From Geosiphon pyriformis uo1 (Eukaryota; Fungi; Glomeromycota), in NCBI GenBank assembly GCA_016748015.1, contig JAAOMT010000254.1, forward strand, positions 1-64,000: DNA of 64,000 bases. Reading direction: 5' to 3'. The position numbers and the translations under genes are program-made. How positions within the stretch are numbered: position 1 is the first letter of the stretch; every line of letters starts with the position of its first letter. Below are positions 3,027 through 60,778 of this stretch, piece after piece. Below the pieces are notes generated by a model. It searched no databases. It had not been told where the DNA came from and worked only from the letters and a program-made list of their open reading frames with translations.

Positions 3027-4691
3027 ATGTTGAATCAACGACCGAAGCCTGACAAAGGTTTTCGCTCATGGAACGCCAAAGCTCTTGGATATCAATCCGT
3101 AAGTCTTTTATCAGTAAATGAAATATAAATACAATAAATTGAAAGTCTTTTTATATCCAGGACTTTCAACCACAACCGAGTATGCAGTCGCAGCCTCGAC
3201 CGCATCCTCCCTCTGTGAAACGGTTCACCGTCGCTGAAGTCACCGGAAAGACCGAATCCAAAGTCGCTGGGTATCGCTTTAGCAATGCTGTCGCATTGGG
3301 AAAGCTTTCACCAGCTCTTCCCCCTTTTGATCCTTCTGCTAAGATTTCACAACTACCTCTTCAAGAATCAGTTACTACGATTTCACAACTATCTCTTCAA
3401 GAATCAGTTACTCGATTTACATCGAGCTTCAAAAACTCTACTACAATTTCTGGTCCTCAATATAACAATGAGATGACCAAGCATTTTCTGGAAGGATCGA
3501 ATACACTAGCAGAGCAAGAAATTAAAAAACGAGAACAAGTTTGGGCATCGGAAAGTTCTACCAATCTATCGGGTTCAATGCCACTAAATGATACATGGCC
3601 CATGGAAGAAGAGTCATTTGTGTTGGAAGAGACGGCACCTGTGAATGCAGATCAATTCAACAATAAAAATGTTTGTGATCTCGATTGAAAACTTTCCCCA
3701 GAGTTGATGATTTGTCATATTTATTTTTTATTTGATTGGATTATTTTAATTGAAAGGATCATTTTAATAATTCTTGGGATAAGAGGATTGATCAATATGA
3801 CGAGGAGATGGTCGACGGTTGGGAAAATTTAATCAAAACGAATAATTCGGGGACAGGAATAGGAATAAGGACAAGGACCTCTTCACAAATAGTACCTATC
3901 AAATTTGATCAATTTTTTTGCCAATCAAGGTTGGCTCTGAAAATTTTTAAATTTTAAATTTTTCGAATACTTAGACCTCACAGCCCTCAGGCGATCAGGC
4001 TAAAGTCTTTTACACTGAAGTTGGGCAATTTCAATCAAACATATCTTACTTTAGCCAAGATTATCAAGTTCAAAATCCAATACCAGATCCCACTCAATTC
4101 ATCGATGTTCCACAAGCTATATTTCATTCTACTCAAATTAAACAACCTCAAACATCCGTACCTAACCCTAATCAAACCATCTATGTTCAAATCATTCCTG
4201 AATCAAGTAACGGTCCCCAGACTCGACAAATCGTAACCAATTTTAGCTGCGGTATGATCAATCAGCCTCCGATCCCTGTTTCAACGCCTCAGGTAAATTT
4301 CATCTAAAGGTTAAAAGTTTACAATATTTAACTAAGAATTTATTTATATCTATTCAATTAGGACCCAAATCTTCTGATCGATTTGTCGGATACACCTACT
4401 CCAGAGCAAATTCGGCCACCAGCACTAACTACCTTCCCACCACCAAGAACAAATTCCGCTCAAGGAAGGATAAGTGAACTATTATCTATACTGTCAACAA
4501 TAGATTGGAAAAGTTATATAGCACAAGCGCATCAAGACAAGATGGAGGCTCTCCGGGCAGATAGGGTTTGTTTTTTCATGAGTATTTTTTATATTTTACT
4601 TACTTTATTCATTATGAAAATTTCTTTTTTTTGATAGCCCAAAGACCCAGAACCACCTCGAACCGATTACCAAAATTTAGATTTCCTCTAA
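3027..4691 (+). CDS. Unknown low-complexity (Q/P/S/T-rich) protein, 6 exons (approx. 3027-3098, 3161-3670, 3757-3891, 3975-4292, 4362-4566, 4638-4691)
   Basis: Five short GT..AG introns, all phase 0, give one continuous frame from MLNQRPKPDKG to PPRTDYQNLDFL*. It contains a 36-bp tandem duplication (ISQLPLQESVTT/ISQLSLQESVTR). No recognisable domain. Confidence 0.7.
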
Positions 4692-6512
4692 GTGACAAAA
4701 TCTTCATTAGAGAAATCTTTCATTCATCTATTGACAGAGGAACCATATTTTTCAAAATGACCAGCAATTAGGAACCTTAAAATAATACATGTATTCATTA
4801 AATAATAGAAATTTAATTCCCAAATAATCAAATCTCTAATTACTTGGAAGAGCAATAACAGCAAATGGTTGTTTTTGAACTACGCAATCTACAAGGCTGA
4901 AATAAGTCATTATGCGCGATTAGATTTAGCGCAAGTCCAGAATCCAAGTTCCAAAAGATAAGGAAAAGCCCGTTAAAAAGGTGTGTCAATCAAAATCAAA
5001 GCTTTACAACTTTTTAGTTCCAGTCATTTCGTTTAAAGAGTGTCCTATCGAGCATTTAATATTGAACAAAATATATCACAATTAACCCACTCTCTTCATC
5101 TTAATCAAATTCGCAAAATTATCAAAGTTTCTATTATTAGAACAATTCAAGACCTACTATTCAATGGCCTCAGGGTGAGAATAAAAATTATATTCAATTT
5201 GTACAAAAAAAGAAAACACCAGTCTGTTATAGGAGCCTGGAAATTGAAAAAAAAAACAAAAAACAAAAAAAAACAGGGCAATGAAAACAACTTAAACTAG
5301 TAAATTTAAATCATATCTATTGAAAATTTTAAACTCAAATTATTTATATAAAATTACTATTAGTCAATATTGTTAATTGAACTTGCAAATAATTATAATC
5401 ACATTTATGAAACAAACAATCATGATACAAGCTTTTTATTATAAAATGTAAATAGTTTTGAAGTTTAATAATTTAAAAAATTAATTGATTTTTAGAGTTT
5501 ATGAATATTAAGTGTTATTTGAGATTTTTTATTTAAATATTTTTTGAATTTGGAAATTTTTCAAGTCAGATTTTTTTTTTAAGACTTTTTTCGATTAATG
5601 AATAAAATAAATAAAAAATATTTATTAAAAAATATGTCAAATGTTTTAATTAGTGGGAAAAGACAAATTAATATTTTTTTACAAATTGAATTCGAAATTT
5701 TAATACTATTCAAATAATTTATTTTTATAAAATTTGTTCAACCATTAATAATACAAAAATTACCAAATCCTTTGTTATATTAACTTTAACTGCTAAGCCG
5801 AAAGAACTAACCAGAAAATCAGTTAAAATTTTTCTCTGAATATTGACAGTGAACCAAGTTTAAGTTTGTTCCGTGATTTTGAGATAAGTATAATATTAAA
5901 AATCAAAGACCCGAATTTTTTTATCAGAGAATTTAAAATAATTTTCCGATTCAATTTCCTTTTTTAATCAGAAAGCTTTTCAAAGCTTTAGCTTAAATTT
6001 TAAATCTCTTAATATTTAAAACGTATCACATTTTTCCAATTTCCAAAAAAAGGGATCTTATTCATATATTTTATTTTCAAAAGTATTTTTATTTTTTTAG
6101 TTCTTATACCCCCCCCCCCCATAAACCTGTTAATTTCAAGATTTTTGCTGATCCGTTGTGGAAAAATGAACATGGATCCGGGACATCAATATTTTATTAT
6201 GGAAAGCATTTAAAATAATTTATCTCATCTCTGAGTTTATTGGCGATTTACCCGAAGACTATTCTCCAAATACCTATATACACGTAATACATGGAGTCTT
6301 TTGGAAGGTACTCTCGATGATATACCTTTCAAAAAATTTTAATTAATTTATACCCAATAATCAAACGAAACAATCAAAGATCAAAATATTATCATCTAAT
6401 ATTGATCTCATCAAAACATATCTATTTAAAAGGAAACACCCAGCAACATCTGTGAGAAACCTTTTCAATCAATCAAAACTTTCAATTTCTTCAATGCGAT
6501 AAACGTCTCAGT

Positions 6513-7956
6513 ATGCCATTCAGAAATTTTGGGTTATTTATTATTGTGATATGGACTTGGCAGCTATGGTTTAATGGATTCAATAAATTTGAAAATCAAA
6601 TTCAGATTCATTCGTTACGAAATTTGACGAGAAATTTGAGACTTTATTCAAAAATAATCACTCAAAGATCTCAAGAACTTTTATCAAAAAAAAATCATAA
6701 AAGTTTAAAAAATATATATGACAATTCCGATCTTTTTGATTCAAAGAAATCAGTGAATACTGGTGAATTCAATTTGGCAAATAAAAATTTGGATAATGAG
6801 GATATTGAAAATCAATTGTGGCCTCTAAAGGTACTTCGACAAGATCGGCCCTTATTTTTAGCTTTAGCAAGGTATGCTCGGTATGCGAATTATGGTTATT
6901 GTATGCCGAATAATGACATTGGGAAATCTGTTTCGAATGTTATTGGTTAGATATTTTCAATTATACTTAATCGGAAAAAGTTGTATATAACTTAAGTTTT
7001 TAACAATTTTAATTTATTTTTCTATTCAGCTGATGCAATTATATCGTCGAAGCCAAAAGCAGTTATAGTATATTTCAAAGGAAAAAAATTTTCAGTTCAG
7101 AATTGGTATGAATGGGACTCATCACTTGTTGAATACCCAAAACTTCCATCAAAAGTTGATAAAGTAATGCTTGACCATGTGCAAGCAATGAAACCAGCCC
7201 TTACGGAGAAAATAAAACTTTTATTACAAAAAGATCCCGAGACTTTGGAACGGGTTAGATTTGTAGGACATGGAATTGGTGGTGGTAGGTTTAATGATTG
7301 TTTTAATTCCAAGATTTTTAATATTGAAAATAAACTTTTCTCCAAATAAATTATCTACAGCATACGCAGTTCTAGCGGCCCTACTAGTAAAAGACGAATT
7401 TCAGGAAACAGTATTTGCACGCACAAATATAGTAGTATACACATTTGGCCAACCGCGTATTGGAAATGAACATTTCTCAAAATACGTGAGCGATAATCTC
7501 AAAGTTTTTCGATTCACACACACAAATGACATTCTAACTCGATTCCCGGTATATGATCGTGGACTTCGACATCCTGAAACCGAATTTTGGATTGCAAGTA
7601 GAGATTGTAATTGTCCCCCGTCGATTTTCAAGATTAATGACAATTATCTAGAGTTTGATTATGATCTTTGGATGTGTCGGGTTTACCAGCCTGAAACTGG
7701 GCATTTGAAGGTTCAGGATCATCCGGTATGTAATATAATGTCTAAAGATTAGCTATAAACTTCTGTGTGTTGATTATTTTTTTTATTTTTTTTTACTTAA
7801 AAAATCTAGAAATGCAATGCCGGAGAAATTGTGGATATTTCATATCAAAGTGAAAACGATAATCCTCACAATGGACCTTATTTCAATGTTTTAATGGGTA
7901 AATGTAATTCTATACTACAACCTGATATTTTTCAAGACCTACCAGCTATGTATTAA
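6513..7956 (+). CDS. Class 3 lipase-fold protein lacking the catalytic Ser (GHGIGG); exons 6513-6945, 7030-7284, 7361-7725, 7810-7956
   Basis: Hydrophobic N-terminus; ARYANYGYC; FVGHGIGG|AYAVLAAL; YTFGQPRIGN; RFTHTNDILTRFP; HPETEFWI; CNAG...PHNGPYF. Canonical GT-AG introns keep the frame. Confidence 0.88.
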
Positions 7957-8369
7957 TATTCAGGAATTTAAGATTTGTATCGTGATATCTTTTTTGCAAA
8001 GATGATCACCAAGCAAATTATGAGGATTTTCGTCAAAACGTTAAAAATCAAAATTTTTGGCCAAAATTTTTTTTTTGTGAATATTTCCAACTGTGATACC
8101 TTGTAATGCTAAAAACTCGTTTTATGATTTATGTAAACATTGTAAGACTGTTTTGTCATATAAATAGTTATTAAAGGGATGGAAGCTAAATATCGAGTTT
8201 TAGCAAAATCTAGATATATCAGAAACCCTTTAAGATAATTATGAAGAAAAATGTATCATGTTTAATGAAATAGAAACTCTCATTACATGAATTTGCGTTT
8301 TAATAATTTTAATACTTGTCATTTATTCGGCATTACCTATACACCAGTATTTATTTACTGCGTCTCGAT

Positions 8370-10340
8370 CTACTTAATTTTTTGGAACTTTTAACGGGTG
8401 TTGACTTTATCTGAATAAATATCACTAAATTTTCTTTTTAAAATCTGAATTCTATTATTATCATTTTTTACTTCCAGTCTTTTCCAACTCTGCTTTAATA
8501 ACCATATAAAAAAAAATTAATTTAGAATGGATAACTGAAAAATCAATCAAAAAAAAAGTAAAAAATAAATAAAGTTACAATAAATTCCTGTAATTTTAAT
8601 ATTCCTGACTTCATTTTATGAATATTGTTCGGGTGGGAGGCTATGGTAAGACTTCCAAACTCTTCATATACATATAAACCATCCTTCCACATAATTAACA
8701 TCTTGATTTCAAACAAATACCCAAGTATTCCGATTACAGCCCGATTATTGTAATCAACGCTTCCAGTTTCCATTGCTTTTAATATCCGAACATTCACACA
8801 ATCCCTTAATTTTCGACACAATTTGAAAAAATCCATTGAAAGCTTTGTTAAAACAGGCTTAGTAGGAGATCCTGCCTGTTCTCCAACAAAAATTTCTTCA
8901 CCCGTTTCCCAAGACCAAGCCAACAGATCAGCAGATTTTCCTTCAACTACTTTGTGTATTGTAGGATCAAGTCCATAATTTTTTCTGTATATAGATGCCA
9001 AGTACAGGAACTTTTAGACTGAAAAAAATAAAAAAATAAATTTCAATAAGATATAATTAAAAAAAATAAAATAAAATCTTAGCTAAGTCTAATACTTACG
9101 CTCGTCAATCTAAATTTGTAAATTCCTGTAAAGCATTAGAAAAAAAACGATGTCCCAATAATGATGTTCACTACTGTTTGAAATATCTGGAATAGATTTA
9201 AGAAATGATTCGATCCTACAATATAAAATAAAAAATGAAACATTAATTACAACAGGTGACGAATCAATAAAACCTTAATTAATACTTATAAATGTAACAT
9301 TACTCTATATAAATACTTTTTAAGTTTTGTTGTTACTTCTTCAAATATCTTTTAACTAAAATCAATGAGAATCCAATCAGAAATGGTTTTCTTTGGTCCA
9401 CCTTCAGTTAAGAATTACTAATTAGTAATCATTTTAAATAACAAAAATAAACCATGTTATTACCTTATAATAATCCTCTATAACTTCACACCGGTAATCC
9501 GGTAACATTATATCGCTTTTTGGTTTTACAGAAAGCAGTTTTATGTATTGATCAAATGATGCTTTGATAAACACCTCATTCTCTACTTTTTTATTCTCAT
9601 CTTCATAATCGTCCTATAGTATTAATGACAAGAAACAAACGTTGAATAAAATTCTTTGACTTGTAATGTAACTCGTTTACTAAAAGTTCTAAAATTAATC
9701 ACTTGCCTTTTCCACTTTTTTTGATGCAATTCGATATTTGGAAGACCAAATCGCTTTGTTGAGTTCGTTGTTTTTGATAGTCTACATTAAAAAAAAAAGC
9801 ATTCAATAATGATCTAAGAGGTTTAATAAATACACTTAGGTGTGAAGGAAGTTCACAAAAAGCCACAAGTTGTTTAGACATTACGGCCTTGCCCAGCGTT
9901 TTTATGGCCACGTGCCCACGGCACTACCCATCGGTTTTATCCACGGCAAAATCCTTCTCAACCCACAGCTGCTGGATTGACCATAGAGTACGCTGGCACC
10001 ACCTGTAAACTGCATCAAGTCACTAATATCACTAGATACTTTCCTGTAATTCATCCTGAAATACACAGGCCTTCTTATAGGCATGATGGGTATCTTGATA
10101 CTTTTGCATCAAGTAACTCAGCTCATGAGCCAAAGACTTATATGAGTTGTGTTTACTGATAGGTGTTATTAAATGTTGCTGTTGTTCGATCCAATAAAGA
10201 TCCTAATCGTTTACGCCCCATGTTTTTTGGATCACGGCTCCAATAATCTACCAACGGAATGTTCAGACTTGCATTTTTCAATGTGAAAATACAAAGTAAC
10301 TTACCTGAGTATTTTAACTTTGAGTTTTCTGTTAACATCG
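8370..10340 (-). pseudogene. Disrupted multi-exon gene of a Glomeromycotina-type hypothetical family with a possible restriction-endonuclease-like (PD-(D/E)XK-like) C-terminal domain
   Basis: Fragments include DYWSRDPKN, MAIKTLGKAV and the 8543-9001 ORF with KSADLLAW...GEEIFVGEQAGSP...K. Intron-like GT/AG breaks are present, with frameshifts/stops in the first and last exons. Fold assignment rests on motif spacing only. Confidence 0.5.
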
Positions 10341-10575
10341 AAGATCAGCTATTGATAGCTGATCTTTTCATCGTAAACTTTATTTTCCTTTAATAGGAAT
10401 TTGCAAAAACTATTACGTGTTTGATACATTGCAATCTAAATAAAACGATTCAAATTTTTTCTATTGACAAATGAGATAAATGTTTGCAAGTACCAAAATA
10501 TATTTCAAATGATTGGCTCAAAAAATAACTTTCTTTAACCAAAGATGTGGAGACATTTAATTCGCGAAATTTTTT

Positions 10576-12100
10576 TTAAACCATCGCAGGACAATCAGAC
10601 ATTATATGACCAAAATATGGCCCAAAATGAGCAACTAATGGGTTTAAAATATCATTATCTGTGGTACCTGCGTTACAAAACTTTATAAGAAGAATGAGAG
10701 TGATTAGTTCCGAAATTTCTTTTTTGTTATAAAAATTTGAAAGTAACCTAAAAATCAAAAAACTCACCATTGACTCCTCTAACAATCCATCAACAACTCT
10801 TTTTCCCACTGGACACTTGTATAGTACTTTATTAGCCTCAACCTTATTAGCTTTAACCTTTTTCATTTTAATATTTTTCTCTCTCCCTTTTATTTCTCCA
10901 ACACAATCACAATTATCATCTGCTAGGCCAATCCAATACTCCTTCGGATGATGAAGGAAGGGTATTTCCGGAGTATATGTGGGAAATCTTGGAACCCAAT
11001 CGTTCATATTTGTAACACGAAAGATATTTCCTTCCAGTTTTTGATATGCATAGTTTGCGAATTCGATGTTTCCCATTCGTGGTTGACCGAATGTGTACAC
11101 TTCCACTCCTGAACGAAGGTCGAGCAGATTGGGCAGCTTTGGTGACCAATATTTATCACGCTTAAATGCTAAAGCTGCGAATATAGCAAATACTTTTTTA
11201 TAGATCATAAATTTTGAGGTAAGCAAAAGTTGCACATTTTTTAAAAATGGGTTTTTTTTTTCCAAATTTATTCTCAATACTATGGACAAAAAATTAATAA
11301 TACCTCCAGCTAACCCATGCCCTAGAAATCGCGGCGTCATTACCCCATTATCAGCATAGCGTGTTCTGTCAGCATACAATCTTTTCAATATTGGCCATCC
11401 TTTCAAAAATTCATTATAAAATTCTTCATCAACCATTGTACCAGGATAAGGGCAGGGGTACGGTATCAACCTCCGAGGTAAATATCTGGATTTAACTTCT
11501 AGATTTCTAGCTCGAATTAAAATACGTAGCTGTTTTAATCGTAAAATGTATATGATTTGTGCTGTTCGATATTAGTTATGTAAATTCTTAATATACAGAA
11601 ATTTAATTATAGCAAGAAATCATCGCTACCATAGAAGTTTTCGGTGATTTTAATGACTTTACCACGAGCATGTGGGGATATCCCCTGGACCAGACATGAT
11701 GCAATTTTTGCTGATGATGCCATATCTTGTATTTTTAAAACAGTTTCATGGTTATTTGGTAGTGGGATCTTTTGTTTTTCCTCTTTTGATCTTGGTATTA
11801 ACTTTTTCGAGGTTAATTTGGTAGGAGTTGGTGAAAGATTTTATTAATATTTTTTTTCTTTTATGTGAATCTCATAAAATTAGTATAGATTCAAGGTACC
11901 TTTTTTCTTATGTAAGGATCAAAAAATGTTTTTGGTGTTGAATAATTCGAATCTTGAATATTAGGAGTTATCATAGCCGTTTTCCATGATATTTCTTCTC
12001 CAAGTAGTTTATATTCTAAACAAATTTTATCAAGTGAATAGAACAAAAATATTGATGTTGTAACGAAGATAATTTGAAGTAATTTGAAGTAAAAATCCAT
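10576..12100 (-). CDS. Class 3 lipase-fold protein lacking the catalytic Ser (GHGLAG); 5 exons, first intron acceptor ambiguous
   Basis: N-terminal hydrophobic segment (MDFYFKLLQIIFVTTSIFLFY); AKIASC; FLGHGLAG|VFAIFAAL; YTFGQPRMGN; RVTNMNDWVPRFP; HHPKEYWI; CNAG...AHFGPYFG. The ORF track reads through two stop-free introns. Confidence 0.82.
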
Positions 12101-12394
12101 ATGGAGGTAGTAAAATTTTGAGTTTTTTATATTGACATTTTTATGTATAATAGAAAGTCCCTATGATAACCCTATCAATACTTTATCCCGTTATTTCATT
12201 TTTACCGTTTCATGATTGGCTTTTGCTTTTACTTTACTGCTGTTCCACCTTACAAAGATTTGAAAAGTTTAACAGGGTTTTTGTAAAAACAAAAAAATTA
12301 GTTTGAAAATAGATTTGCGAACTATTTACTTTTTCTTTGAAATTTTCTCATCATATGTATTTATACTATTTAATATTAATGGTAAACTATTTCC

Positions 12395-13796
12395 TCAGAC
12401 TTCATTCAAATCAATATCAATGTCAATAGGACAAGTTCCCATTATATATCCGAAATAAGGACCAAAGTATGCTTCTTTTTTTGGTGGTCTATTGTAAAAT
12501 TGTGCATTACATCGCTACATATGTGAATTAAAAAGAAATTTGTGATTTAATAAATATATATAGATTCTTAAAATTTGTAACCACCATGTTACTTAGCTTA
12601 CCGGATTATCTTTATAACCCTGATTAGATTTCAATTTTGGAATCCATTCATTAGGACACTCATAAACGGGGTATTCGTTACAAACACAATCCAGAGTTTC
12701 TTGGATCCAATATTCTATTCCGTGATGATTATAAGATTTAGGAAAAGAAGGAACGTAATCATCGAAATAAGTTATACGATTAACAGTAATAAAGGTTTGT
12801 ATATGACGAGCTAGCTCGCCATTACCAAGGCGTGGTTGTCCGAATGTTGTAATGGTAAAAAGTGCCTTGGATTCTATCGCTGTTAAATTCTTTTCTTTAA
12901 TGTATTCCACAGCCGTTAAAATTGCCCAAACTGAAAAGGAAAATTTTTTTTAAAGATCTTTCAAATATGTATAATTCAGAGAATAGATATGTAATAATAA
13001 TAACCACCACCAAGCCTATAACCCGTGAAAAAGAAGCCAAAAGTTGAATTTTGAGGATTCTCTGTTAAAGAATTTAATTTTTCAAATATTTTTTGTTTTG
13101 CCAGTCTGAATTGTCGATAAAATTCTGAATCAACTGATTTTCCTTCTAGCCCTGGATATCCCATGATTCGATTTTTACGTTGACGATTCCAAAAATCATA
13201 ATTAAATCTGTTGATTCCATTGAAATATACGATATAGCCTGGAATTTTGGAGTGGCTTAAAGTTGTTGGCCAATACAATTCTTTATCAGCTCGAACTTTA
13301 ACGTTATTATTATGATAAAGTCAAATAGAACATTAGGATTAAAAAATAAAATTTTCAAAACTCACAATTATTAAAACTTTGAATTACCATAGATTTCTTT
13401 TGAATAACTATCAACTAATTTGAAGAGACATGAAGCTTCTTGAGCTTTTTCGGCCATTTTACTAAAAAACTCCAAGGTGCCAGGATTCGTAACCGGAATT
13501 CTCTGAACACTATTACTTTCACTTCGAGACCATAAAGAATTGAATTCTTTACTTTGAAACTGACCATATGACCTTCTGTACCCTTTAATACTGTTATCAA
13601 CTGACTTTTTTTCGAGTTCATTTATAACATAATTTAATTGACCGAAATTAATAGATGCTTCTGTAGGCGATGAATTGATTAAGATATTTTCTCCAAGGGA
13701 AAATAGCATTAAAAAAGAATTTGTTAAAATATTTAAAAAGAGTAAATACGCAGTCCATTTTCTTTGATACCAATATAGAATTGAAGAAAAATACAT
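12395..13796 (-). CDS. Class 3 lipase-fold protein lacking catalytic Ser and His (GYRLGG; AYFGPYFG); 4 exons
   Basis: ORFs 13371-13796, 12976-13278 and 12593-12910 plus a last exon RCNAQFYNRPPKKEAYFGPYFGYIMGTC...EV* are joined by GT-AG introns. Motifs: TTFGQPRLGN, RITYFDDYVPSFP, HHGIEYWI. Confidence 0.85.
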
Positions 13797-16700
13797 ATTA
13801 TAATTAAAAACTTTTCGTTAATCGAAACTTTTTTTTTTTTTTGAAATTTTAATTCAATTACTCCTTAAACATTTGCTCAAGGCCTTTAATGAACTCATGA
13901 TCACCAATATTTTCATTTCTCCTTATTCATTTCCTGATCCTTCAGGTAAATGTTTTATTGGGATGATACATGATTAATTTTGCCAATAAATACGAAATTA
14001 TGTGATATTTGTAGTTTTTAACTGGCCCTGGTTACTCCTTAACCTGTCTCAGCGGACTGCCCACCCCCCCCCCCTTATCCTCCCCCATAGCCTGAGTGAA
14101 ATAACGCTCAAGATTAGAGTCTAATTAATTAGTTCTAGAATTTGTTTTAATTCAAACTTCCAATTCGAGAATAAAATTTCAGATGGTTATTAGGAAGATC
14201 GATACTTGAAATGGACCTAGATCCGATTTGTTTGTAGATTGTCAGAAACTTATTCAAAGTTCAAGTATTTCAAGATGGCACACATAAAATTATTTTTTAG
14301 CTTCAAAACTCTTTGGGCTTTTGTGAACAATACATCAATAATGATTATTTCTAGTTTAAAATAATTTCAAATTGAAAGATTTTATAGGTAAAAATATCCT
14401 ATAAATTCAAAGAGACATTATTAAAAAAGTAGGTCTAAAAAGAAAAATGTCAAAGAATTCATTTTCTTGAGTTCCCAACTAGGAACGGCAAATTGAATGG
14501 TTTTTTCCAAAAATTAATAATAATATAATCCGTTAGGTACAGATGCTTATGTCGATATGATCGAGAAGTTGGAAATGATTCACTATCCAAATTTATAGCT
14601 TCTCATGAAATGAAAGTAATCAATTTTTTGTATTTTAATAATTATAATAAAATGGGTCAAAGTTAATTTCTTTAAAAAAAAAGCTAATTATCTAAATAAG
14701 TTTATTCAACTGAATATTTCAAAAAGAGACGAACTGATAACTTCATCTGAAAATCTATACTGAAGAATTTTTCAAAGATTTTTAACTTTTGCAACAATTC
14801 AAAAGTCTAAAATATGTGATTATTTAGAATTACCTACCATGATCATTATGTTCTTTTTTTTCCCAAAAAAGGAATGACTACTTGTCATTATAGAAATGAG
14901 TTTTGGATATATGCGTTGTATGATTGTAGTGACCTCAATTATGAAACTTATATCAAATAATTTCCTATAAATTTTCACTATTCATTTTATTTCTAGTTTG
15001 ACTTGTTAAATTTTGGAAAGGTAATTTTGATATTTTTTCAATTGAAATAGTTTTGCACAAAATTGGTTACCTAAAAAGCTAGATTCAAAGAATGTATCGA
15101 GCATCACTGCACATAATTTTATATATTTTAAAAGTAAGACTTTCTTAAAATATTAATATCTAACTTTTTCACTTTTTTATTATAAGTAAATAAAGAAACA
15201 GTCTGACCCTAGAAAATTTTGAATAATAATGCTTCAATTGGAACTTGCAAAATATTTTAATTATCCATATATTAAGAAAAATATAATTTTTCTGGCTTCT
15301 AACATTGTTAAATGTAGAAATGTAGAAATTTTTAAATGAACTATTCCTTACCGATCAAGTAGTCATTTTATTTGAAAACATATTTCCAGATTCAATTTTA
15401 CAATAGAAAAATCTTTTAATTGTAATTCTTTTAATTAAACAACTTATATTAGAAAATTTTGAAAATGTTCAGTTAAAAAGAAACCAATTTAATATTTGGG
15501 ATTATGAAAGTGAAATTGCATAAACTAATCAATTTAAAAGGAAAAATTTTTCAGTCATTGTAACATTCTATAAAAAGTTAGTCATATATATTTTGAATTA
15601 TTAAACTTTGTATTAAATTAATTAAATCATATTTTATATATTAAAAATTGATTATTAAACACAAAATTTTATAAGTTTTTATTTTTACTGATTAAAACAT
15701 TATGAGCCATAAAACATTCTCTTTACTGATATATTTTTTGCCTATTTAATTTTTTAATTAGCTTCTTTTTTTCCATTTAAAATAAATGTAATCCAGGAAA
15801 TTTTTTCGTTGGATGTATTCTTTTCCGTTTAGAAAGTTATAAAAACGATGATGATGTATAGATTCGGGTTTTCATTTTTCCATGGCTCATCTTTAACCAA
15901 TTAAAAATCATGACACTGGGAAAAAGTTTGATGACCCATTTCAAGATTTCTATTTGATTTTGTAAATCTTTCTGACGAGCTTCTCTAGGATATTTATCAA
16001 GTAAGTTTTTTAAAAAAATTTTCACAAAAAAGAGTTTGCTATCTTACCGGTTCAGTTTACTCGTTGCCAGTCATGCTTGAAGATGAAACCATGTGTGCAA
16101 CTGTCCAGTGTTTAGTGAAGACAGATTGCTTCCTTCATTCTTTTTATTACGCTTGCCGAGTCTTTTATTGAGGGTTATGTGGGGAAAGTTTTTTTTTGAA
16201 AAATATACTTGATAATTTAATCAATAAAAATTCTCTTGAACCTTCTCTTGTTCAAGGCTTTTTATTCATAGATCTTGATATATGAAGAAAACTAATCTTT
16301 TTACAAAAATTTTATTTCAGCGGCAGAGGTATCCACATCTATGGATGGGTAGATTACTATTTTCCAAGTTTTAGAGGTTAGGGCGTCATCTTTTCTTATT
16401 GATTTCCCTCTATTCTTTTCACTACCTCCCCCTTTGACCTGTTGTAATGATGTTGAGAAATAAAAAAAAAATGATTTAATGAGTTTGAATAGTGAGATTA
16501 GACACCTCACTCATGAAACAAAATCGCATCTCTGAACAACGAAAAACGATTAATGAAAATTTTTCGTGTTTGTTTTTAGATCACATTATTATTATTAGCT
16601 TTATGCTAAAATTAATATCTAATCATGTTATATTTTTTCTTTCGATAACAGTAAGGAGAAAAGAAACAAGAAACAAAATGGCTCTCGATTGATTTGATTT

Positions 16701-21448: not shown

Positions 21449-22108
21449 ATGTCAGACACATACACCTTATTAACACTCTTATTGGTCTTCGTACCGATAA
21501 TGATCGGTGCTCCGACCATCTGTTGTTGTTTATGTCGTCGTTGTTTTAAGCGTGACTCAAACGGTTTACCTAGACAATATGCAATTGGTGCACCAAGAAG
21601 AGATAATGGACCTCCGTCGTTGCCTGCTGAAGACTGTCTTGTCTACGTTTACCAATATAACCCAGACGGTGAATCATCTTTATTAGGTTCAGAAGGTGGT
21701 CAAGGCGGTACACCACAAGCCGCGTATGGCATTAACGGACGATACTATGTACCTCAATTACCTTTAATACCACATTCCCCATATTATGATGATGCACCGC
21801 CAAAATATGAAGATATTGTTGATTTATCTGTTTTGGATAATAATCAAATAAGTCAACAACAACAACAACAAGAAAGATTGGAACCCTACCGAGATGAAGT
21901 GAATTATAATGAACATGTGATAGTTTACAATGAAGAAGGGGAACGAGTGACACCCTATCAACTTGACATTCCTACTTCAAATCATCCGGAATCATCTCAA
22001 CAAATACATCAATCAAATGAATCCTCTTCACTAGATGAAGTAAGTCATTCGGAACCATTGGTTAATATCGATGATGAATCAGACCCTACAAATAATACTA
22101 GGTTTTAG
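21449..22108 (+). CDS. Single-pass membrane protein with juxtamembrane Cys cluster and PPxY motif (Rcr1/WBP1/VOPP1-like architecture)
   Basis: Intronless 219-aa ORF with an N-terminal hydrophobic helix, CCCLCRRC, APPKYED and an acidic disordered tail. Confidence 0.8.
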   Translation: MSDTYTLLTLLLVFVPIMIGAPTICCCLCRRCFKRDSNGLPRQYAIGAPRRDNGPPSLPAEDCLVYVYQYNPDGESSLLGSEGGQGGTPQAAYGINGRYYVPQLPLIPHSPYYDDAPPKYEDIVDLSVLDNNQISQQQQQQERLEPYRDEVNYNEHVIVYNEEGERVTPYQLDIPTSNHPESSQQIHQSNESSSLDEVSHSEPLVNIDDESDPTNNTRF

Positions 22109-43149: not shown

Positions 43150-43960
43150 GAAATTTGGTCTGAAAATTGTTGAAATTTCAGTTCTGTGAGCTTTCCAATG
43201 TATTGAATCTTTAAAGGTCATAAAATTGGGTTTTGTAGAACATTTTCACAGGTGTGGAACAAGTCATAAAGTCTAAGAACAGCTCTGAGCTTGTAGCGAC
43301 TGTTTGTTGGTCCAGTTGTTGTCTTGAATTTGTTGTGAAGTTGTTTCTGAATAGCTTCTTTTGTGAGGTTTGCTGTTGTAAATTCAGTTTCCGTTTATAG
43401 AGTGTTTTTCCAATGTGAAAATATCTATAGATTGGAGGATATTCAGTGTTTTTCTCATTGAGACACAGTTGAAGTCTTTGTTGAATTGTAGCATTTGGTG
43501 AAATACTAATTGGAGTGAGCATTAGGTTTTCTCTTAAAGCAAGCTTTAAAAGTTCTGGCAAGTAAATTCCAGAATAACTTCTTGTGTTCTTCTTATATGG
43601 GTGATATTTTTGTGAATTTAGGGCTAAATTTGTAACTACTTCTGTTTGGGTATAATTAATGTGGTTTCCAGTAACAGTAATGGATAATTCCTGTCTCTTA
43701 TACACATCAAGTTCTGGCAAGTAAATTCCAGAATAACTTCTTGTGTTCTTCTTATATGGGTGATATTTTTGTGAATTTAGGGCTAAATTTGTAACTACTT
43801 CTGTTTGGGTATAATTAATGTGGTTTCCAGTAACAGTAATGGATAATTCAGGTATTGTTTTTAAAGCTAACATTAGTTTTTGGGATAATTGTTGAATGTT
43901 TTAAGGAATAGACATTATAAGAGATTTGAAAATAAAAGAAAATTATTTTTGGTGTATGGG
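43150..43960 (-). pseudogene. Extra ORF (ORF3) of Gypsy C between integrase and 3' LTR; unknown function
   Basis: 220-aa ORF 43211-43873, of which 53 aa are artefactual. A homolog sits at the same position in element A (38159-38365, YFQIGKTLY). Confidence 0.75.
43691..43708 (+). other. Nextera/Tn5 mosaic-end adapter contamination
   Basis: CTGTCTCTTATACACATC, 18 of the 19 nt of the Tn5 mosaic end, lies between two identical 141-bp copies. Confidence 0.95.
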
Positions 43961-47000: not shown

Positions 47001-50000
47001 TACTGTGAATAACTCCAATTTCTAAATTATTTAAGAAAATTATGAGGTAATTATTGGGGTTGTAAAAAGTAACTCGGACTTTTTTTGTTCTTTCTGAAAT
47101 ATAAATGTTTGGGATCAAAATATTATGTTCCAAGCAAACTTGTTCATTGGACTCAAAAATTTGTTGTGTGGCTGTTGGCTTTAGGCAGATGTAGATTTCT
47201 GGATGTTCTCCAAAGGGTGAAATGGTAATCAGTTGTGGAAGTCTAAGAATCTGGTGGGATTCGTTCTATATGTTAAGAGCTATATTAACTGGAACTGTGA
47301 ATCATCCAGTTGAACCAAAATCTTGGGTTCTTCTATCACTTTTTCCTAATTGTTCTCTTTGATTGACTAGTTGCAAACCCGAAATGTTGATTAAGGGTAG
47401 GTAAATAGCTTGGGCAATTTTTTCAGCATGTTTGATCTTGAATGGTTTGTCAGTTTCATTTTAAAGCATCACTGTAATGTCTTCAGTATATCTAGCATCA
47501 ATTATTTCTCTTTTAACATTGATTCCTTTGCTTGCCAAAGAAGACCGGGAGATGATTTGAACCATTGCTCCTGGCGGGATTTCAAGTGCAATTTTGAGGT
47601 TGATTTTTGTGAGAGATTTGGGTTTGAGAACAAGTGTATCCTTGCCTGGATATCTTAGGTCATATCCAGCATCAATTTCGTGTGCTTTTTCAGGTTTTAT
47701 TCCTTGTCCATTGTTTTTGAAGTATTTAAGTTGTAAGGCAGGCTGATTTTTAATAAGATAGATGGGTGTTGCTTCAATTTTTTCTGTTGCTTCAGGTTCT
47801 CCAAATTTAATTTTGTTCTCATCATTTTCACTGGGCAAGGGGATACTAAGAGCATAGCATTCAGGACATTACTGTTCATCACAAGGCATAATGTATTCTT
47901 CACATAACCTAATGTTCATTTGCTCTAATCATTGAATTTGAGCTTCTTGGGTTGGGTAGGTATAACTTGCAATTTGGTGGTAGACTTCTATTTCGTCTTC
48001 GTAATCGAATCCAGCTAATTCTATGGTGTATTCAATGTATTCTGCTTCTTTTATTTGACGAACATCTTTTTTGGTAGCTCCATTAATTAATGCCATTGCT
48101 AGGTTGAAAATCATCTTAGCATCATGGGGGTAGTGATAAAGTTTGTTGAGAGCACTGTTGTATGCTGCATTAAAGGGTGTTTCTCTTTTTACTTTTTCTG
48201 AAATTAATAAAGCATATTGGCAGGTCTGATCACAAACTCCTCCTCTCATGGCTACATCAATTCAATCGCATTCTTCCAGTAGCATATTTCCACAAGTTAA
48301 ACAAGGAGTGTTATTCTATTTTCTGCTCTTTTTTATTAGATGGCTCCATCGTTCTCTGTGACAAGCCTTGCAGTAATAACAAGTATGATTTTCATATTCT
48401 TTTTCAGATGAAATGCAGGCTCCCATTGATAATAGTTTCTTGTGGCAGTCCTTACATTTAAGGGGAATATAGGGGTGTTGTTTCCTTGGTTCGGGTTTTA
48501 AGTAAGGGATATTCTATCCAGAGGTTTTGGGTTCAGAGTGTGGGGTAAAATGTTCTTGTTCTGTTTTATCAGCCCAGTTGGACATTGATCCAAAAGCCAT
48601 GAATGTTTTAATGAGGGGTTTTTCCTCTTCTGGTTCGAATTCAAAAGCTGGGGCTTTTTCAGAGCGTTTGTTGAATGTACTACAAGTGGCAGGTACCCGG
48701 ACGTGTTGTCCTTGGTAGGAGATTGTTAACTCTTGTGTTTCCCAATTCAGATTAGCATTGGCTTTTTGAAGCCAATCATTTCTGATGAAAGCTTGGTACT
48801 GGAGTGCATCCATTATAAGAACTTTGACTGGAATGGTAATTCCATCAAGAGTGAACGGAAAATTGTCAATTTCTCCTACTAGGGTCTTTTTTATGTCATT
48901 GGCAGTAACAATTACTGATTGAGCTGGTTGGTCGACATTTCTCTTCAACTGTTGCATTAACTGGTAGGTGATAATGCTTCTGGCGAATTTATTGTCTAGG
49001 ATCAAGCGAATTGTCTTTCCTTTGACTTCTGCTTCAGTGTATATAGCTGTGATTGCTTTTTGTTCATTGACGGCTGCATTGCTAAGCAAGAATGGTAATT
49101 CATTTGCTTTAAACTCAAAAGGTAATATATTTAAAAGGTTAGCATTTTCAGCAATTCTGGCTAGTGGGATTGTGGTGAAAGTATAGGAAGGGTTTTGTTG
49201 TTGTGCTGCAGCTCTATCTTCCGAGAGTGCAGTATGGTGAAAATCCTGTTCTTCTGGCATTGTTAAATAACTGGGTTAAGTGTAGTAGTGGTTGGGTCTT
49301 GGTTGAGTGGAATTTTGGGGAACTAATTGGTTGTTCGAACTGATTCTATTGTTGTTTACTTGGTATCAGTTTTATGGTGTAAATTGATTTTGTGTAATCA
49401 GTCTTCGAGCAGGTACTTGATAATGTTGTATGGGTGGTTGTTGGTACTGCTGTTGGATTGGCTGTGGGATGGGCTGATAATAGTTATTTTGGTATTGGGA
49501 TCTTGGTGGATAGTAAGCTGGTGGTGGTGATTGATAATAAGATTGCTGTGGTAGAGGGTAACGTTGATTACTCCTATTTTGTTGGTCTCATTGTAGCTTT
49601 CTGCAATCTTTTTTCTAGTGGCCAGAAATTCCACAGTAATGGCAATTCTGAGGCTGGTTATTGGAAAGTGATACAAAGTTATTTTGATTTTGTCTTTGGA
49701 GTGGTTGATATCTTTGGGGTTGCTATTGTTGTTGATTGGTGAAATAGTTTTCAACCTTTTTTGTGAGTTGGTCAATTTTTTCCTTAGCTGCTGAGCTGGT
49801 TTTTCCAATTGCCAAATTTACAAGTTTTGTGCAATTGGCCTCTTCCATAGCCATTTCATATCTTTTCGCATGCTGTATGGCAGAGTTTAAATCTTCTGGC
49901 ACATGTGGGCAAACCTTCTTAATTAGTTTATCTTTTAGACCAGCGATAAATTGATCCAAGATTTGAGCATCGGAATAATAATTGTTTGTTTTGAGTTGGC

Positions 50001-51076
50001 GAATTTGTCTGAGAAGTTTGTTGAATTTCCCAATATAAGTTATAACAGATTCAGAGGGTTCTTGTTTGATATTTCGAAAATGATTACGAAGGGTGATGGA
50101 GGTATTATTGTTGGTGAACTGTTCAAGAAAGGCTGCTTTGAAAGCGTTCCAATCATTGAATAGGACAGCCAAGTTTTCAAACCCCTGCTGTTCCTTTGAG
50201 AAAGTAGGAAATTGTTCTTAACATTCTGGCAGCATTCCATCCATTTGCATCTCCAGCTTTAGTAACTTGGTCGAGCTATTCTTGGGGACTGGTCTCAATA
50301 TCTTTTCCATTAAATTCAGAGATTTTTGTGATGTATGTTGTCATTTTGTCTTCTTCGTTTTCACTGTCTATTGATTCTTTTTCAGTTATTTCAGAGTTGT
50401 TTTCTTTATTTGCTGCTGTCTCAGAGTGTTCACTTTGATTTTCAGCTAGAAAATCAAGGAGATTGGAATTAGTTTGAAGGAGTTCTTGTTGTCTGGTGAG
50501 ACTTCTGAGTGATGTAAAATCTTCTGGTCTTGCAAATTGATTCAAGGGTGAATTAGGTGTTTGTGCTTGTGCAAGTGAAACTAGAAAAGGTGTGATAGTA
50601 AGTGGAAGTTTTGAACTGGTTCCTTGTTCAGGTGTTTGTAAATAGTTGGCAGTTGTTTTTGGTAGTGTTGGAGTATTTGGAGTGGTTTTTGAGTATTGTT
50701 TTAATTTGTTTTTGTCTTTGTTGCTTGTTTCTGTTTCCAATTCAAAATCAATAGTGTATTGAGACTGCACTGGATATGTTTCTTCACAGTATTTGATAAT
50801 GTTAAAATTAAGTTCGTGAAAGTAAGTGGCAAGTGTTTTACTGTTAAGGTCTTCAGTTCCCAACTGTAAATAGTGTGCTAAATTATTGTAAAGGTTGCTT
50901 TTAACTTCTGAGATATTGTAATTTCTAAAAAGATAATTGTTGATGTGGTTTTCAATGTATTGGTATACTGATTTCTTGAAAACTTCAATTCCGTCTGAAA
51001 TGTTGAATCTTTGCTTGCAGTGGGTGTAAATTGACTGGTAATACTCTAGAGTTGTTGCATCTGGTGTGGTCGCCAC
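44040..51076 (-). pseudogene. gag-pol polyprotein of Gypsy C, broken by stops and frameshifts
   Basis: Retrotransposon gag (49723-50270); knuckle CHYCGISGH*KKDC (~49600-49645); protease LILDNKFARS (48514-49260); RT with VYLDD (~46260-46280); RNase H (ERVIAYASR..EKNY..ELE); integrase (GIDLVGP, NGLVERFNRTL, WDGPF). No chromodomain seen. Confidence 0.95.
47303..47715 (-). pseudogene. dUTPase domain within pol of Gypsy C
   Basis: All five motifs are recognisable: DAGYDL, SRSSLASKG, IIDARYTED, IAQA, RTQDFGSTG. Confidence 0.92.
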
Positions 51077-58825: not shown

Positions 58826-60778
58826 ATGAAACCGGTGGGCTTTGCTGCTGGTGGTTCTGGGTCCGTTTCGGCTGGGTTGGGGACCCGGTCTGGTGTCAAA
58901 AATAAGTGTTCGGTTGGTCCTCAATCTCGCGGTGCGTCCTATAAGAAGCCGAAGAAACCTGTGGCAATTGGCAGTTTGGTGGAGTCGTCTGCTGGTGTCT
59001 CGAACATTATGGATGAAAGTGGTGACGGACCTAACATTAGACGGTCGTGGGCTAGCGAGGTCAACAGCGAAGTGGACAGCGTAAGTGGCATCTTGGACTT
59101 GGATAACTTGAAAAACGTCATCACTGAGGAAACTAGCTATGCAGAATCAGATGCAGGTTTGGATGACGACATGAATGATGCCACGCCAAGGAAGATGCGT
59201 ACCCGCACCTATGTTCTAAACAGTAAGCTGCCACCTCTCTCTTTCAATGTTCTAAGTGATGGTGAAGACACTTTGCCTCTTCCGAGTCCTAAATTTTGTG
59301 GGTCCAATCGCCTTCCTCCAGTCGGGTCACGTGCACCAGAGAAACAGAGTTTTAATTTGTCAAAATCGTTTGCATTGGACATTGAGCTATCTGCCGTGCC
59401 TGGCAAAACTAATGGTGATAAGTTGGTTTCAATCAAAAAAATTTTTTATTGTGTTGATGGATTTGGGGGAGCCTCAACTCCCTCAAAATTCCCAGGGATC
59501 ATCAGATCCTCTTTTACATCTGAAATTAGTTTGAATAAGGCTAGGAAAATGGTGATTGGTGAGAAAATTTTGGTAAATGATGATCTAAGAAAAGTAAACA
59601 GCTGTTCAGATCGGGAGGTGATCGTCAAAGAAATCCCAGTAGATCTTCCCAAATTGGCAATTGAGACGGTGTTTTCCAGGTTTGGCAAGATTGTTTCAAT
59701 CAAAGTGCAGCTTATTGGTCTTTGGCAAAAGGCCCTGGTAGAATATGAATCATCTGAGATAGCTGATTTGGTCGCAGCTAGATGGTCTGTGCTCATGGGA
59801 AAGGATTCGGTCTGAGTGGCAAAAGCAAATATTGATAAACAAACATGAGTATCGAGGGATCAGCATCAGGCTTTACTTTATACTCTTCCAGTTGGCACTA
59901 ATGCTCATGACCTCTCCAATTTGTTGGAATCATATGGTGGGAAGACTTGTTATATCGGCTGTAACCCTAGTTCATATGTTCGTGATAGATGTGCTGTAAT
60001 TTGTTTTAGTGATGAGGCATCCAAATTGGCTGCTATTGGTACCGTTCCAGTTTTCAGGAATGTGAGTTTGCATTGGGCTGGTCTTTCTTTGGCCAGTTGT
60101 GCTCATTGTAAACAATTTGGTCATGTTTCGGTCAATTGTTCCTTGGGTATGTATTCTGGTGTTCAAGGAAGAAAGATGGTTTCTGAGCAAGATCGGGTTC
60201 ATCTAGCTGGGATATATAAGAAGAAGTCGGCCCCTGTCACTCATCCAGTTTCTTTTGGTGAGAAGACATGGGCCCAAGTGGCAGGCAGTTCCCTTTCTCG
60301 CGTTGTCTCTTCAGGTGCTCCTGGTGTCAGTTTGGTCTCTGGTTTGATGGCTTTCCCAATGGATTCCTCCTCGTCTAGTGCCGCTGATCTAGGTGGTCGC
60401 CTAGCTGTGCTAGAACGCTCCGTGGAAATTCTCTTAGACCAAGTCTCACTCATTTTAAAGAAGTTAAGTTTCGTTGACTTGGTGCCATTGGCATCTTCTC
60501 CCTCAGCTCTTCCTTTGGTGTCTCCGACTGCCGTTGTTTCAGATATGGACCCGGGTTTGGAGTTGGATGGCACGTTGTTGTCATCTGTCTCTTTTTCTTC
60601 CAATGTTGGTGGGTTGGTTGTTGATTTCAGTCTGAGCAGTTCTAAGGTTTTGACTGCCAAGATTGGCAGTTTGGAATCAAATATAATGGCTCTTGAGGCT
60701 TTAGTTTGCTTAGTCTTGGATAAATTGGATCATCTGCATTCTGGATCGGGTTCGTTGGCTTTTCCTCCGTCTCAATGA
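58826..60778 (+). pseudogene. LINE ORF1 (RRM-like plus CCHC knuckle), with two in-frame TGA stops near 59813 and 59846
   Basis: VIVKEIPVDL...FSRFGKIVSIKV (RRM-like); CAHCKQFGHVSVNC; coiled-coil-like C-terminus. ORFs 58826 and 59921 share a frame. Confidence 0.88.

Follow-up and report, generated by a model that had tools for sequence, protein, structure and literature searches.

Three neighbouring class 3 lipase homologues without the catalytic serine in Geosiphon pyriformis: candidate pseudo-enzymes from a large family

Three serine-less lipase homologues and their gene models

The first 64,000 nucleotides of contig JAAOMT010000254.1 of the fungus Geosiphon pyriformis (assembly GCA_016748015.1), referred to here as the window, contain three class 3 lipase homologues that have all lost the catalytic Ser. 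Gene 1 (G9A89_002389, KAG9300511.1) lies at 6513-7956 on the forward strand, while gene 2, the lipase part of G9A89_002390 (residues 1-266 of KAG9300512.1), and gene 3 (G9A89_002391, KAG9300513.1) lie at 10576-12100 and 12395-13796 on the reverse strand. In the public annotation the three are consecutive hypothetical proteins.

The nucleophile elbow of gene 1 reads GHGIGG (7266-7284) with Gly (GGA, 7272-7274) at the catalytic Ser position, followed by a phase-1 intron (7285-7360); the triad Asp (GAC, 7528-7530) is found in the loop THTNDILT and the triad His (CAC, 7867-7869) in HNGPYF. Gene 2 carries the elbow GHGLAG (11304-11322), again with Gly (GGG, 11314-11316), together with a triad Asp at 10999-11001 and a triad His at 10627-10629. 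In gene 3 the elbow GYRLGG (13005-13023) places Arg (AGG, 13015-13017) at the nucleophile position and Tyr (TAT, 13018-13020) where the elbow His is expected; the triad Asp (12758-12760) is kept, and Tyr (TAC, 12467-12469) takes the place of the triad His just before xGPYF. The G-x-S-x-G elbow is therefore absent from all three genes, the triad Asp is present in all of them and the triad His in genes 1 and 2 only. The oxyanion segments read FKGK, IRAR (Ala at 11509-11511) and FNGI for genes 1, 2 and 3, so that the FRG(S/T) motif with its Ser/Thr is gone as well. In addition, all three genes keep TFGQPRxGN, the Asp loop, HxxxE(Y/F)WI, CNA and GPYF, and a CxC motif appears as DCNC, NCDC and DCVC. 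The loss of the catalytic Ser was the central claim of the initial annotation, and its statements on motifs, residues, codons and coordinates all agreed with direct reading of the sequence.

Gene models were built by direct reading of positions 6000-14400. The gene 1 model joins exons 6513-6945, 7030-7284, 7361-7725 and 7810-7956 (399 codons), the gene 2 model exons 12100-11900, 11801-11630, 11561-11304, 11192-10768 and 10680-10576 (386 codons), and the gene 3 model exons 13796-13388, 13295-13005, 12930-12602 and 12514-12395 (382 codons). Each is open from ATG to stop with zero internal stops, and the introns are all GT..AG and 68-111 nt long. The composition-based probability of about 385 stop-free codons arising by chance at 27% G+C is ~2e-15. 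The genes have three intron positions in common, and these agree in phase: one (phase 1) precedes the oxyanion strand, one (phase 1) comes directly after the elbow, and one (phase 0) precedes xCNA. An additional intron interrupts the N-terminal region of gene 2. The frame and splice check thus confirmed the intact frames and the three common intron positions noticed earlier. Exons were joined only to count stops and for comparison with the annotation; homology searches were run with single exons, and the whole-protein queries were the annotated proteins (residues 1-266 for gene 2).

The annotated proteins and the rebuilt models agree in exon structure across the lipase core and differ at the ends. 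Residues 6-341 of KAG9300511.1 equal residues 64-399 of the gene 1 model. The annotated gene begins at a tiny exon, 6291-6305 (MESFG), and splices past the hydrophobic start of the open reading frame (ORF) at 6513, so that the presence of a signal peptide in gene 1 depends on which 5' structure is real. A hydrophobic stretch begins all three ORF-based models. KAG9300513.1 corresponds to residues 30-232 and 234-382 of the gene 3 model. Its start is an internal Met, as is that of KAG9300512.1, a protein that also runs on into an unrelated downstream gene. The gene 2 model ends in the family-typical GPYFGHIMSDCPAMV followed by a stop, which the annotation reads past.

The assignment to class 3 lipases is carried by sequence profiles and by the predicted fold. 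The annotated proteins of genes 1, 2 and 3 scored 80.1, 52.5 and 50.2 bits against Pfam Lipase_3 (PF01764; cut-off 22), and individual exons also matched. A profile of four family proteins retrieved Thermomyces lanuginosus lipase at E 2e-26 and aligned the family Gly with Ser146 and the family Asp with Asp201; the top match of this profile was 1GT6, the structure of an S146A mutant. The fold test was made on gene 1, for which an AlphaFold2 model (KAG9300511.1; 61-sequence family alignment) reached a predicted local distance difference test score of 84.9 and a predicted template modelling (TM) score of 0.84. Foldseek placed 6QPP, 1TIB, 1UWC and 3TGL on top (E 1e-14 to 1e-12; TM-score by target 0.63-0.74), with the Rhizomucor miehei lipase-propeptide complex 6QPP and 1TIB as the best matches (E 1e-14) and Rhizopus lipases and feruloyl esterase A also near. 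As modelled, the Geosiphon proteins are bona fide class 3 lipase folds.

With the fungal class 3 lipases (1TIB/1DT3, 3TGL/6QPP and Rhizopus 1LGY; PF01764) they share the fold and the order of motifs, from the AAYC helix through the oxyanion strand, the elbow, xxGxPRxGN, the D-x-V-P loop and E-x-W-I to H-x-x-Y-F, as well as the terminal disulfide cysteines; the long N-terminal region before the core resembles that of Mucoromycota prepro-lipases. Different from these enzymes, the Geosiphon proteins have Gly at the nucleophile position (Arg in gene 3), Lys, Arg or Ile instead of the Ser/Thr of FRG(S/T), and in gene 3 Tyr instead of the triad His. Their copy number also stands apart, with hundreds in Geosiphon versus a handful among fungal class 3 lipases.

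Family size, phylogeny and coding history

The genome searched comprised 128.3 Mb in 792 contigs. The published G. pyriformis assembly is given as 129 Mb in 795 scaffolds with 29% G+C (PMC9453076). At least 171 Lipase_3 matches were found in the genome (783 first-look candidates). A back-translated pattern for GHGxGG elbows occurred 301 times genome-wide, compared with 10 times for the reversed-pattern control, whereas GHSxGG elbows numbered 48 (38 with AGY and 10 with TCN codons). As genes 2 and 3 are missed by the GHGxGG pattern, the count of 301 sets a minimum for the Ser-less copies. The DNA-based tabulation of the elbow drew on these counts and on 62 distinct post-elbow exons. Among 181 annotated domains, the nucleophile position was occupied by Gly in 136, Ser in 15, Ala in six, Asp in five, Arg in five, Cys in one and Glu in one. 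Tabulating the elbow residue across the genome, a check proposed in the initial annotation, therefore showed Gly to be dominant. All four GGN codons are used for the elbow Gly among the copies, indicating that it was held through synonymous turnover. The Arg of gene 3 recurs at the same position in four other annotated family domains.

The annotated proteins of genes 1-3 scored 172-191 bits against the family profile, and the genes combine the features by which the family was delimited: a non-Ser elbow, TFGQPRxGN, GPYF, six Cys and the post-elbow phase-1 intron. Searched exhaustively with the family profile, 1.84 billion representatives yielded 231 proteins at E<=1e-30. The GPY signature was present in 146 of the 150 best matches, and wherever the source of a GPY-type protein was looked up or named it was always G. 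pyriformis, each protein forming a singleton cluster. The other four came from Coemansia, Paraphysoderma, a fly and the ichthyosporean Chromosphaera; these are canonical multi-domain lipases or lipase-like proteins. Word-indexed protein searches yielded 5-13 matches each, strong only to Geosiphon, and are too insensitive for counting. A literature search, with the original genome paper outside its reach, found no published description of this family. Judged from these searches, the family so far looks Geosiphon-specific.

A separate observation concerns Chromosphaera perkinsii (EukProt), whose 1467-aa protein P0135 contains three lipase-like domains with the elbows GFSSGA, GYGVGG and GYGLGG, so that Gly at the nucleophile position of class 3 lipases occurs outside fungi too.

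Initially described as a cluster of three paralogs, genes 1-3 are real neighbours, but rather than a trio that lost Ser together they proved to be distant members of a family of some 300 copies. Each has its nearest paralogues on other contigs, with an identity of no more than 41-59% even in the exon that is conserved best. In a tree of 144 domains the genes fell into three different subclades, gene 2 within a 7-member all-Gly clade with 99% support. In a tree of post-elbow exons, rooted on non-Geosiphon lipases, the Geosiphon copies with the canonical FRGT/GHSLGG motifs branched beside the outgroup, and genes 1-3 all fell within the radiation of Gly-type copies. Ser-bearing copies are scattered through this radiation, and the well-supported branches force at least five changes between the two states in trees that are both poorly resolved; because AGY and GGY codons are one transition apart, repeated loss of Ser and reversion are indistinguishable. 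Terminal branches in this star-like radiation have a median length of about 1 change per site, and many of its members stand in arrays.

Two Ser-bearing groups deserve mention in their own right. Five canonical copies on five different contigs carry FRGT, GHSLGG and Asp, as well as His-x-GPYF wherever the last exon was found, and branch beside the non-Geosiphon lipases; the canonical copies are probably the true active class 3 lipases of Geosiphon. A young subfamily of five copies on four contigs, some of them very short, has the elbow GHSIGG with Ser encoded by TCA and the oxyanion segment IKGP. Its members differ by only 0.25-0.44 synonymous substitutions per site (dS), and it is the sole clearly recent duplication burst in the sample.

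The initial annotation considered the three genes to be selectively maintained, and the codon-position pattern supports this, pointing to purifying selection over a long time. Compared with their nearest paralogues, genes 1-3 are 60-68% identical at codon positions 1 and 2 and 33-47% at position 3, a contrast that reflects long evolution as coding sequence, gene 3 included. Estimation by the method of Nei and Gojobori (NG86) gave dS above 1.7 or undefined, that is, saturated, with 0.35-0.56 nonsynonymous substitutions per site (dN), hence the dN/dS ratio (omega) that the claim also called for is not usable for these genes. Elsewhere in the family, a close Gly-type pair showed dN/dS of 0.33 at dS 0.42, and the few measurable pairs ranged from 0.33 to 0.69.

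Expression was supported for gene 1. A 473-nt contig of the one public run found to contain part of the locus spans 7221-7852 with 0 mismatches and with the introns removed at 7284|7361 and 7725|7810. The run contains no intronic or intergenic sequence across the 6 kb compared and was for that reason taken as RNA-derived, so gene 1 is transcribed and spliced exactly as modelled. The Gly codon is unchanged in this contig, and the idea that transcripts might restore GxSxG, raised together with the first prediction, finds no counterpart in it. For genes 2 and 3 no signal was seen in this small run, in a comparison of 6,000 bases that did not reach the first exon of gene 1 or the 5' portion of gene 3; silence of the two genes does not follow from this.

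Real decay does occur at the locus, unlike what is seen in the intact genes 1-3. A fourth lipase-like copy persists about 1 kb beyond gene 3 as a remnant at 14823-14939 on the forward strand, detected by the family hidden Markov model (17.2 bits, E 1e-3, profile positions 254-293) as one 39-residue piece with broken frames around it. It reads FRITYHDHYV..FP...H..EFWI..DC, with His now at the triad Asp position; the stretch from the Asp loop through EFWI to DC is alone recognisable, and the same model detected no further piece of the copy nearby. Stops are also carried by some family exons elsewhere.

The replacements themselves bear on decay in a mixed way. It had been argued that Ser to Gly or Arg cannot result from the C>T/G>A decay that affects repeats. 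This holds for Gly, as AGY to GGY is an A>G transition, but not for Arg, since AGG is one G>A step from the Gly codon GGG. Measured from the family consensus codons, all the special changes of gene 3 are single C>T or G>A steps (TAT from CAT, AGG from GGG and TAC from CAC), and this gene has thus drifted further in the AT-biased direction. Of the three, gene 3 is the likeliest to be under relaxed constraint, with its frame, splice sites, cysteines and structural motifs still complete.

Proposed function and its alternatives

Intact Ser-less homologues, evolution of a coding type and a gene 1 transcript that keeps the Gly codon make a non-hydrolytic pseudo-enzyme, as proposed in the initial annotation, the best reading of the locus. 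In full, genes 1-3 would be functional, selectively maintained pseudo-enzymes with a lipase fold, probably of the secretory pathway, that bind a hydrophobic ligand, a reading to which we assign a probability of nearly 60%. The mycorrhizal setting in which the genes were first placed does not apply, as the host is G. pyriformis, which lives with Nostoc and is not a plant-colonising mycorrhizal fungus.

The family probably originated from secreted Mucoromycota-type class 3 prepro-lipases, kin of the Rhizomucor and Thermomyces lipases. It has retained the alpha/beta-hydrolase core, the elbow, the loop with the Asp, in most cases the triad His, GPYF and six conserved Cys positions, and has lost the Ser nucleophile together with the oxyanion-supporting Ser/Thr. 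With both the nucleophile and the side chain of the oxyanion hole missing, the proteins are very unlikely to form an acyl-enzyme. Once the nucleophile became dispensable, Gly could have filled the strained elbow and relieved its backbone strain; going by the known geometry of alpha/beta hydrolases, Gly is the most comfortable residue in this conformation, which would account for its predominance. The six Cys positions are conserved at 87-98% in the annotated family domains and probably form three disulfides. Combined with the pocket scaffold and the hydrophobic ORF starts, they point to proteins that would enter the secretory pathway and whose retained pocket would bind, carry or sense a hydrophobic ligand rather than hydrolyse it, with lipid as the natural guess. 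That the proteins have no hydrolytic activity, are secreted or membrane-anchored, bind a ligand and take any part in the symbiosis is inferred.

Several points weigh against this interpretation. The loss of activity is deduced from the missing Ser, and a His-Asp dyad could still carry out chemistry, given that the Asp is near-invariant and the His 87% conserved. Pairwise dN/dS values of genes 1-3 are unreliable owing to saturated dS, and the RNA evidence is confined to gene 1, in one small run of unrecorded type. In gene 3 both His are gone and a bulky Arg sits in the elbow, so that decay may be under way there. The hydrophobic ORF starts behind the signal-peptide reading are not used by the public annotation, and among 82 annotated relatives whose N-termini are long, only 26 begin with a hydrophobic stretch.

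Ser-less pseudo-enzymes with the alpha/beta-hydrolase fold, such as the neuroligins, are already known, and the Geosiphon proteins would resemble them in function; new here are the sheer number of copies, about 300, and their confinement to a single fungal lineage. In the plant proteins EDS1, PAD4 and SAG101 a class 3 lipase-like domain serves a non-catalytic purpose. They appeared as distant matches, at E 1e-5 to 6e-10 with the family profile and at ranks 48-50 in the fold search with the gene 1 model. Unlike the Geosiphon proteins, they possess a C-terminal EDS1-PAD4 (EP) domain and act as cytosolic heterodimers, and Ser-Asp-His is retained in EDS1 and PAD4. The Geosiphon proteins have a single domain, are rich in cysteine and measure about 380-400 aa as modelled. 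Pfam detected only Lipase_3, and no EP domain, in proteins of 341-399 aa, so they are not members of the EDS1 family. Neuroligins and other cholinesterase-like adhesion molecules have an alpha/beta-hydrolase fold in which the active-site Ser is naturally Gly, and are used for extracellular binding. These differ from the Geosiphon proteins in being animal transmembrane proteins of the carboxylesterase type B group that form small families. CGI-58/ABHD5 and the lipase-derived yolk proteins of Diptera belong to lipase families, lack the nucleophile Ser and, rather than hydrolysing, bind lipids or regulate lipases. Their subfamilies are unrelated to the Geosiphon family, they work inside the cell or as storage proteins, and no comparable lineage-specific radiation is known from them.

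The biology of the host makes a hydrophobic ligand appealing. To our knowledge, G. pyriformis is the only fungus that houses cyanobacteria inside its cells. It is closely related to the arbuscular mycorrhizal fungi, and the original genome paper is said to report that, like them, it lacks a fatty-acid synthase of its own. Given this lifestyle, a role in the uptake or recognition of Nostoc lipids is attractive, and the family readily suggests itself as a candidate for partner recognition or for the handling of lipid that the partner supplies. A bolder version, in which hundreds of binding proteins form a repertoire for extracting, shuttling or recognising Nostoc lipids or surface glycolipids, or in which some Ser-free His-Asp reaction is carried out, is speculative and in our judgement rather unlikely to hold; such a repertoire, if real, would be a family-scale answer to lipid acquisition or partner recognition in an organism reportedly unable to make its own fatty acids. 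If the proteins are indeed some 300 selected and partly expressed non-serine-hydrolases, they would be among the largest pseudo-enzyme radiations known in a fungus. Genes 1-3 offer well-defined, intact representatives of three distant subclades that can be cloned for a comparison of hydrolysis and binding, gene 1 with transcript support and gene 3 illustrating that even the His can go.

The alternative that survives best accepts the loss of catalysis and differs in the use to which the fold is put. Rather than carrying lipids, the proteins could form a recognition or decoy repertoire for surface molecules of the partner, or sequester inhibitors or substrates of the roughly 50 Ser-bearing lipases of the fungus. 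The extreme star-like radiation into about 300 copies, the arrays and the spread of genes 1-3 over three subclades would suit such a role, and canonical FRGT/GHSLGG lipases coexist with the family and branch nearest the outgroup. However, no partner is known, and positive selection was not seen in the few pairs that allow measurement (omega 0.33-0.69), leaving this an unlikely explanation.

More doubtful again is that the proteins are still enzymes with another chemistry, using a His-Asp dyad as general base or a nucleophile supplied by another residue. Such a mechanism has a precedent, since alpha/beta-fold enzymes exist in which Ser is not the essential nucleophile, and conservation of the remaining triad is considerable. 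Asp is kept in 169 of 171 annotated family domains and His in 136 of 155; within the Ser-less domains Asp is the fourth most conserved of 245 positions (99%) and His stands at 87%, and 106 of 119 Gly-type domains show the combination G-D-H. The active-site scaffold is also whole, with the elbow, TFGQPRxGN, HHxxEYWI and GPYF in place. Against this, His ranks below the structural G-P-Y (93-98%) and is replaced in 13% of domains, mostly by Asn and in gene 3 by Tyr. The residue after the oxyanion Gly, which should support the oxyanion, varies freely (conservation rank 146 of 245), and Ala, Asp, Arg, Cys or Glu are all tolerated at the nucleophile position. The six Cys fit three disulfides, which leaves zero free thiol.

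Least likely of all, one or more of the genes, gene 3 foremost, could be young pseudogenes that have yet to acquire a stop, as the decayed neighbour, the stops in other family exons, the missing RNA signal of genes 2 and 3 and the C>T/G>A steps that cost gene 3 its elbow His, triad His and small elbow residue might suggest, but the open frames of 382-399 codons, intact splice sites, complete set of structural motifs and cysteines, codon-position contrast, correctly spliced transcript of gene 1 and recurrence of Arg at the nucleophile position in other domains all speak for maintained genes.

Further features of the window

Between genes 1 and 2, a multi-exon gene at 8711-10266 on the reverse strand, single-copy in the genome and without a match in the Pfam scan, encodes residues 267-560 of KAG9300512.1; its fusion with gene 2 in that protein probably reflects a merge in the annotation. 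A Pfam scan of ten further long ORFs in the window yielded no match; long ORFs of 168-329 aa, at 164-1553, 3182-3688, 21449-22108, 43211-43873, 48514-51076 and 58826-60778, have no family at E<=0.001. The three-gene region is accompanied on both sides by homopolymer C tracts of about 12 bases, at 6108-6120 and 14063-14075.

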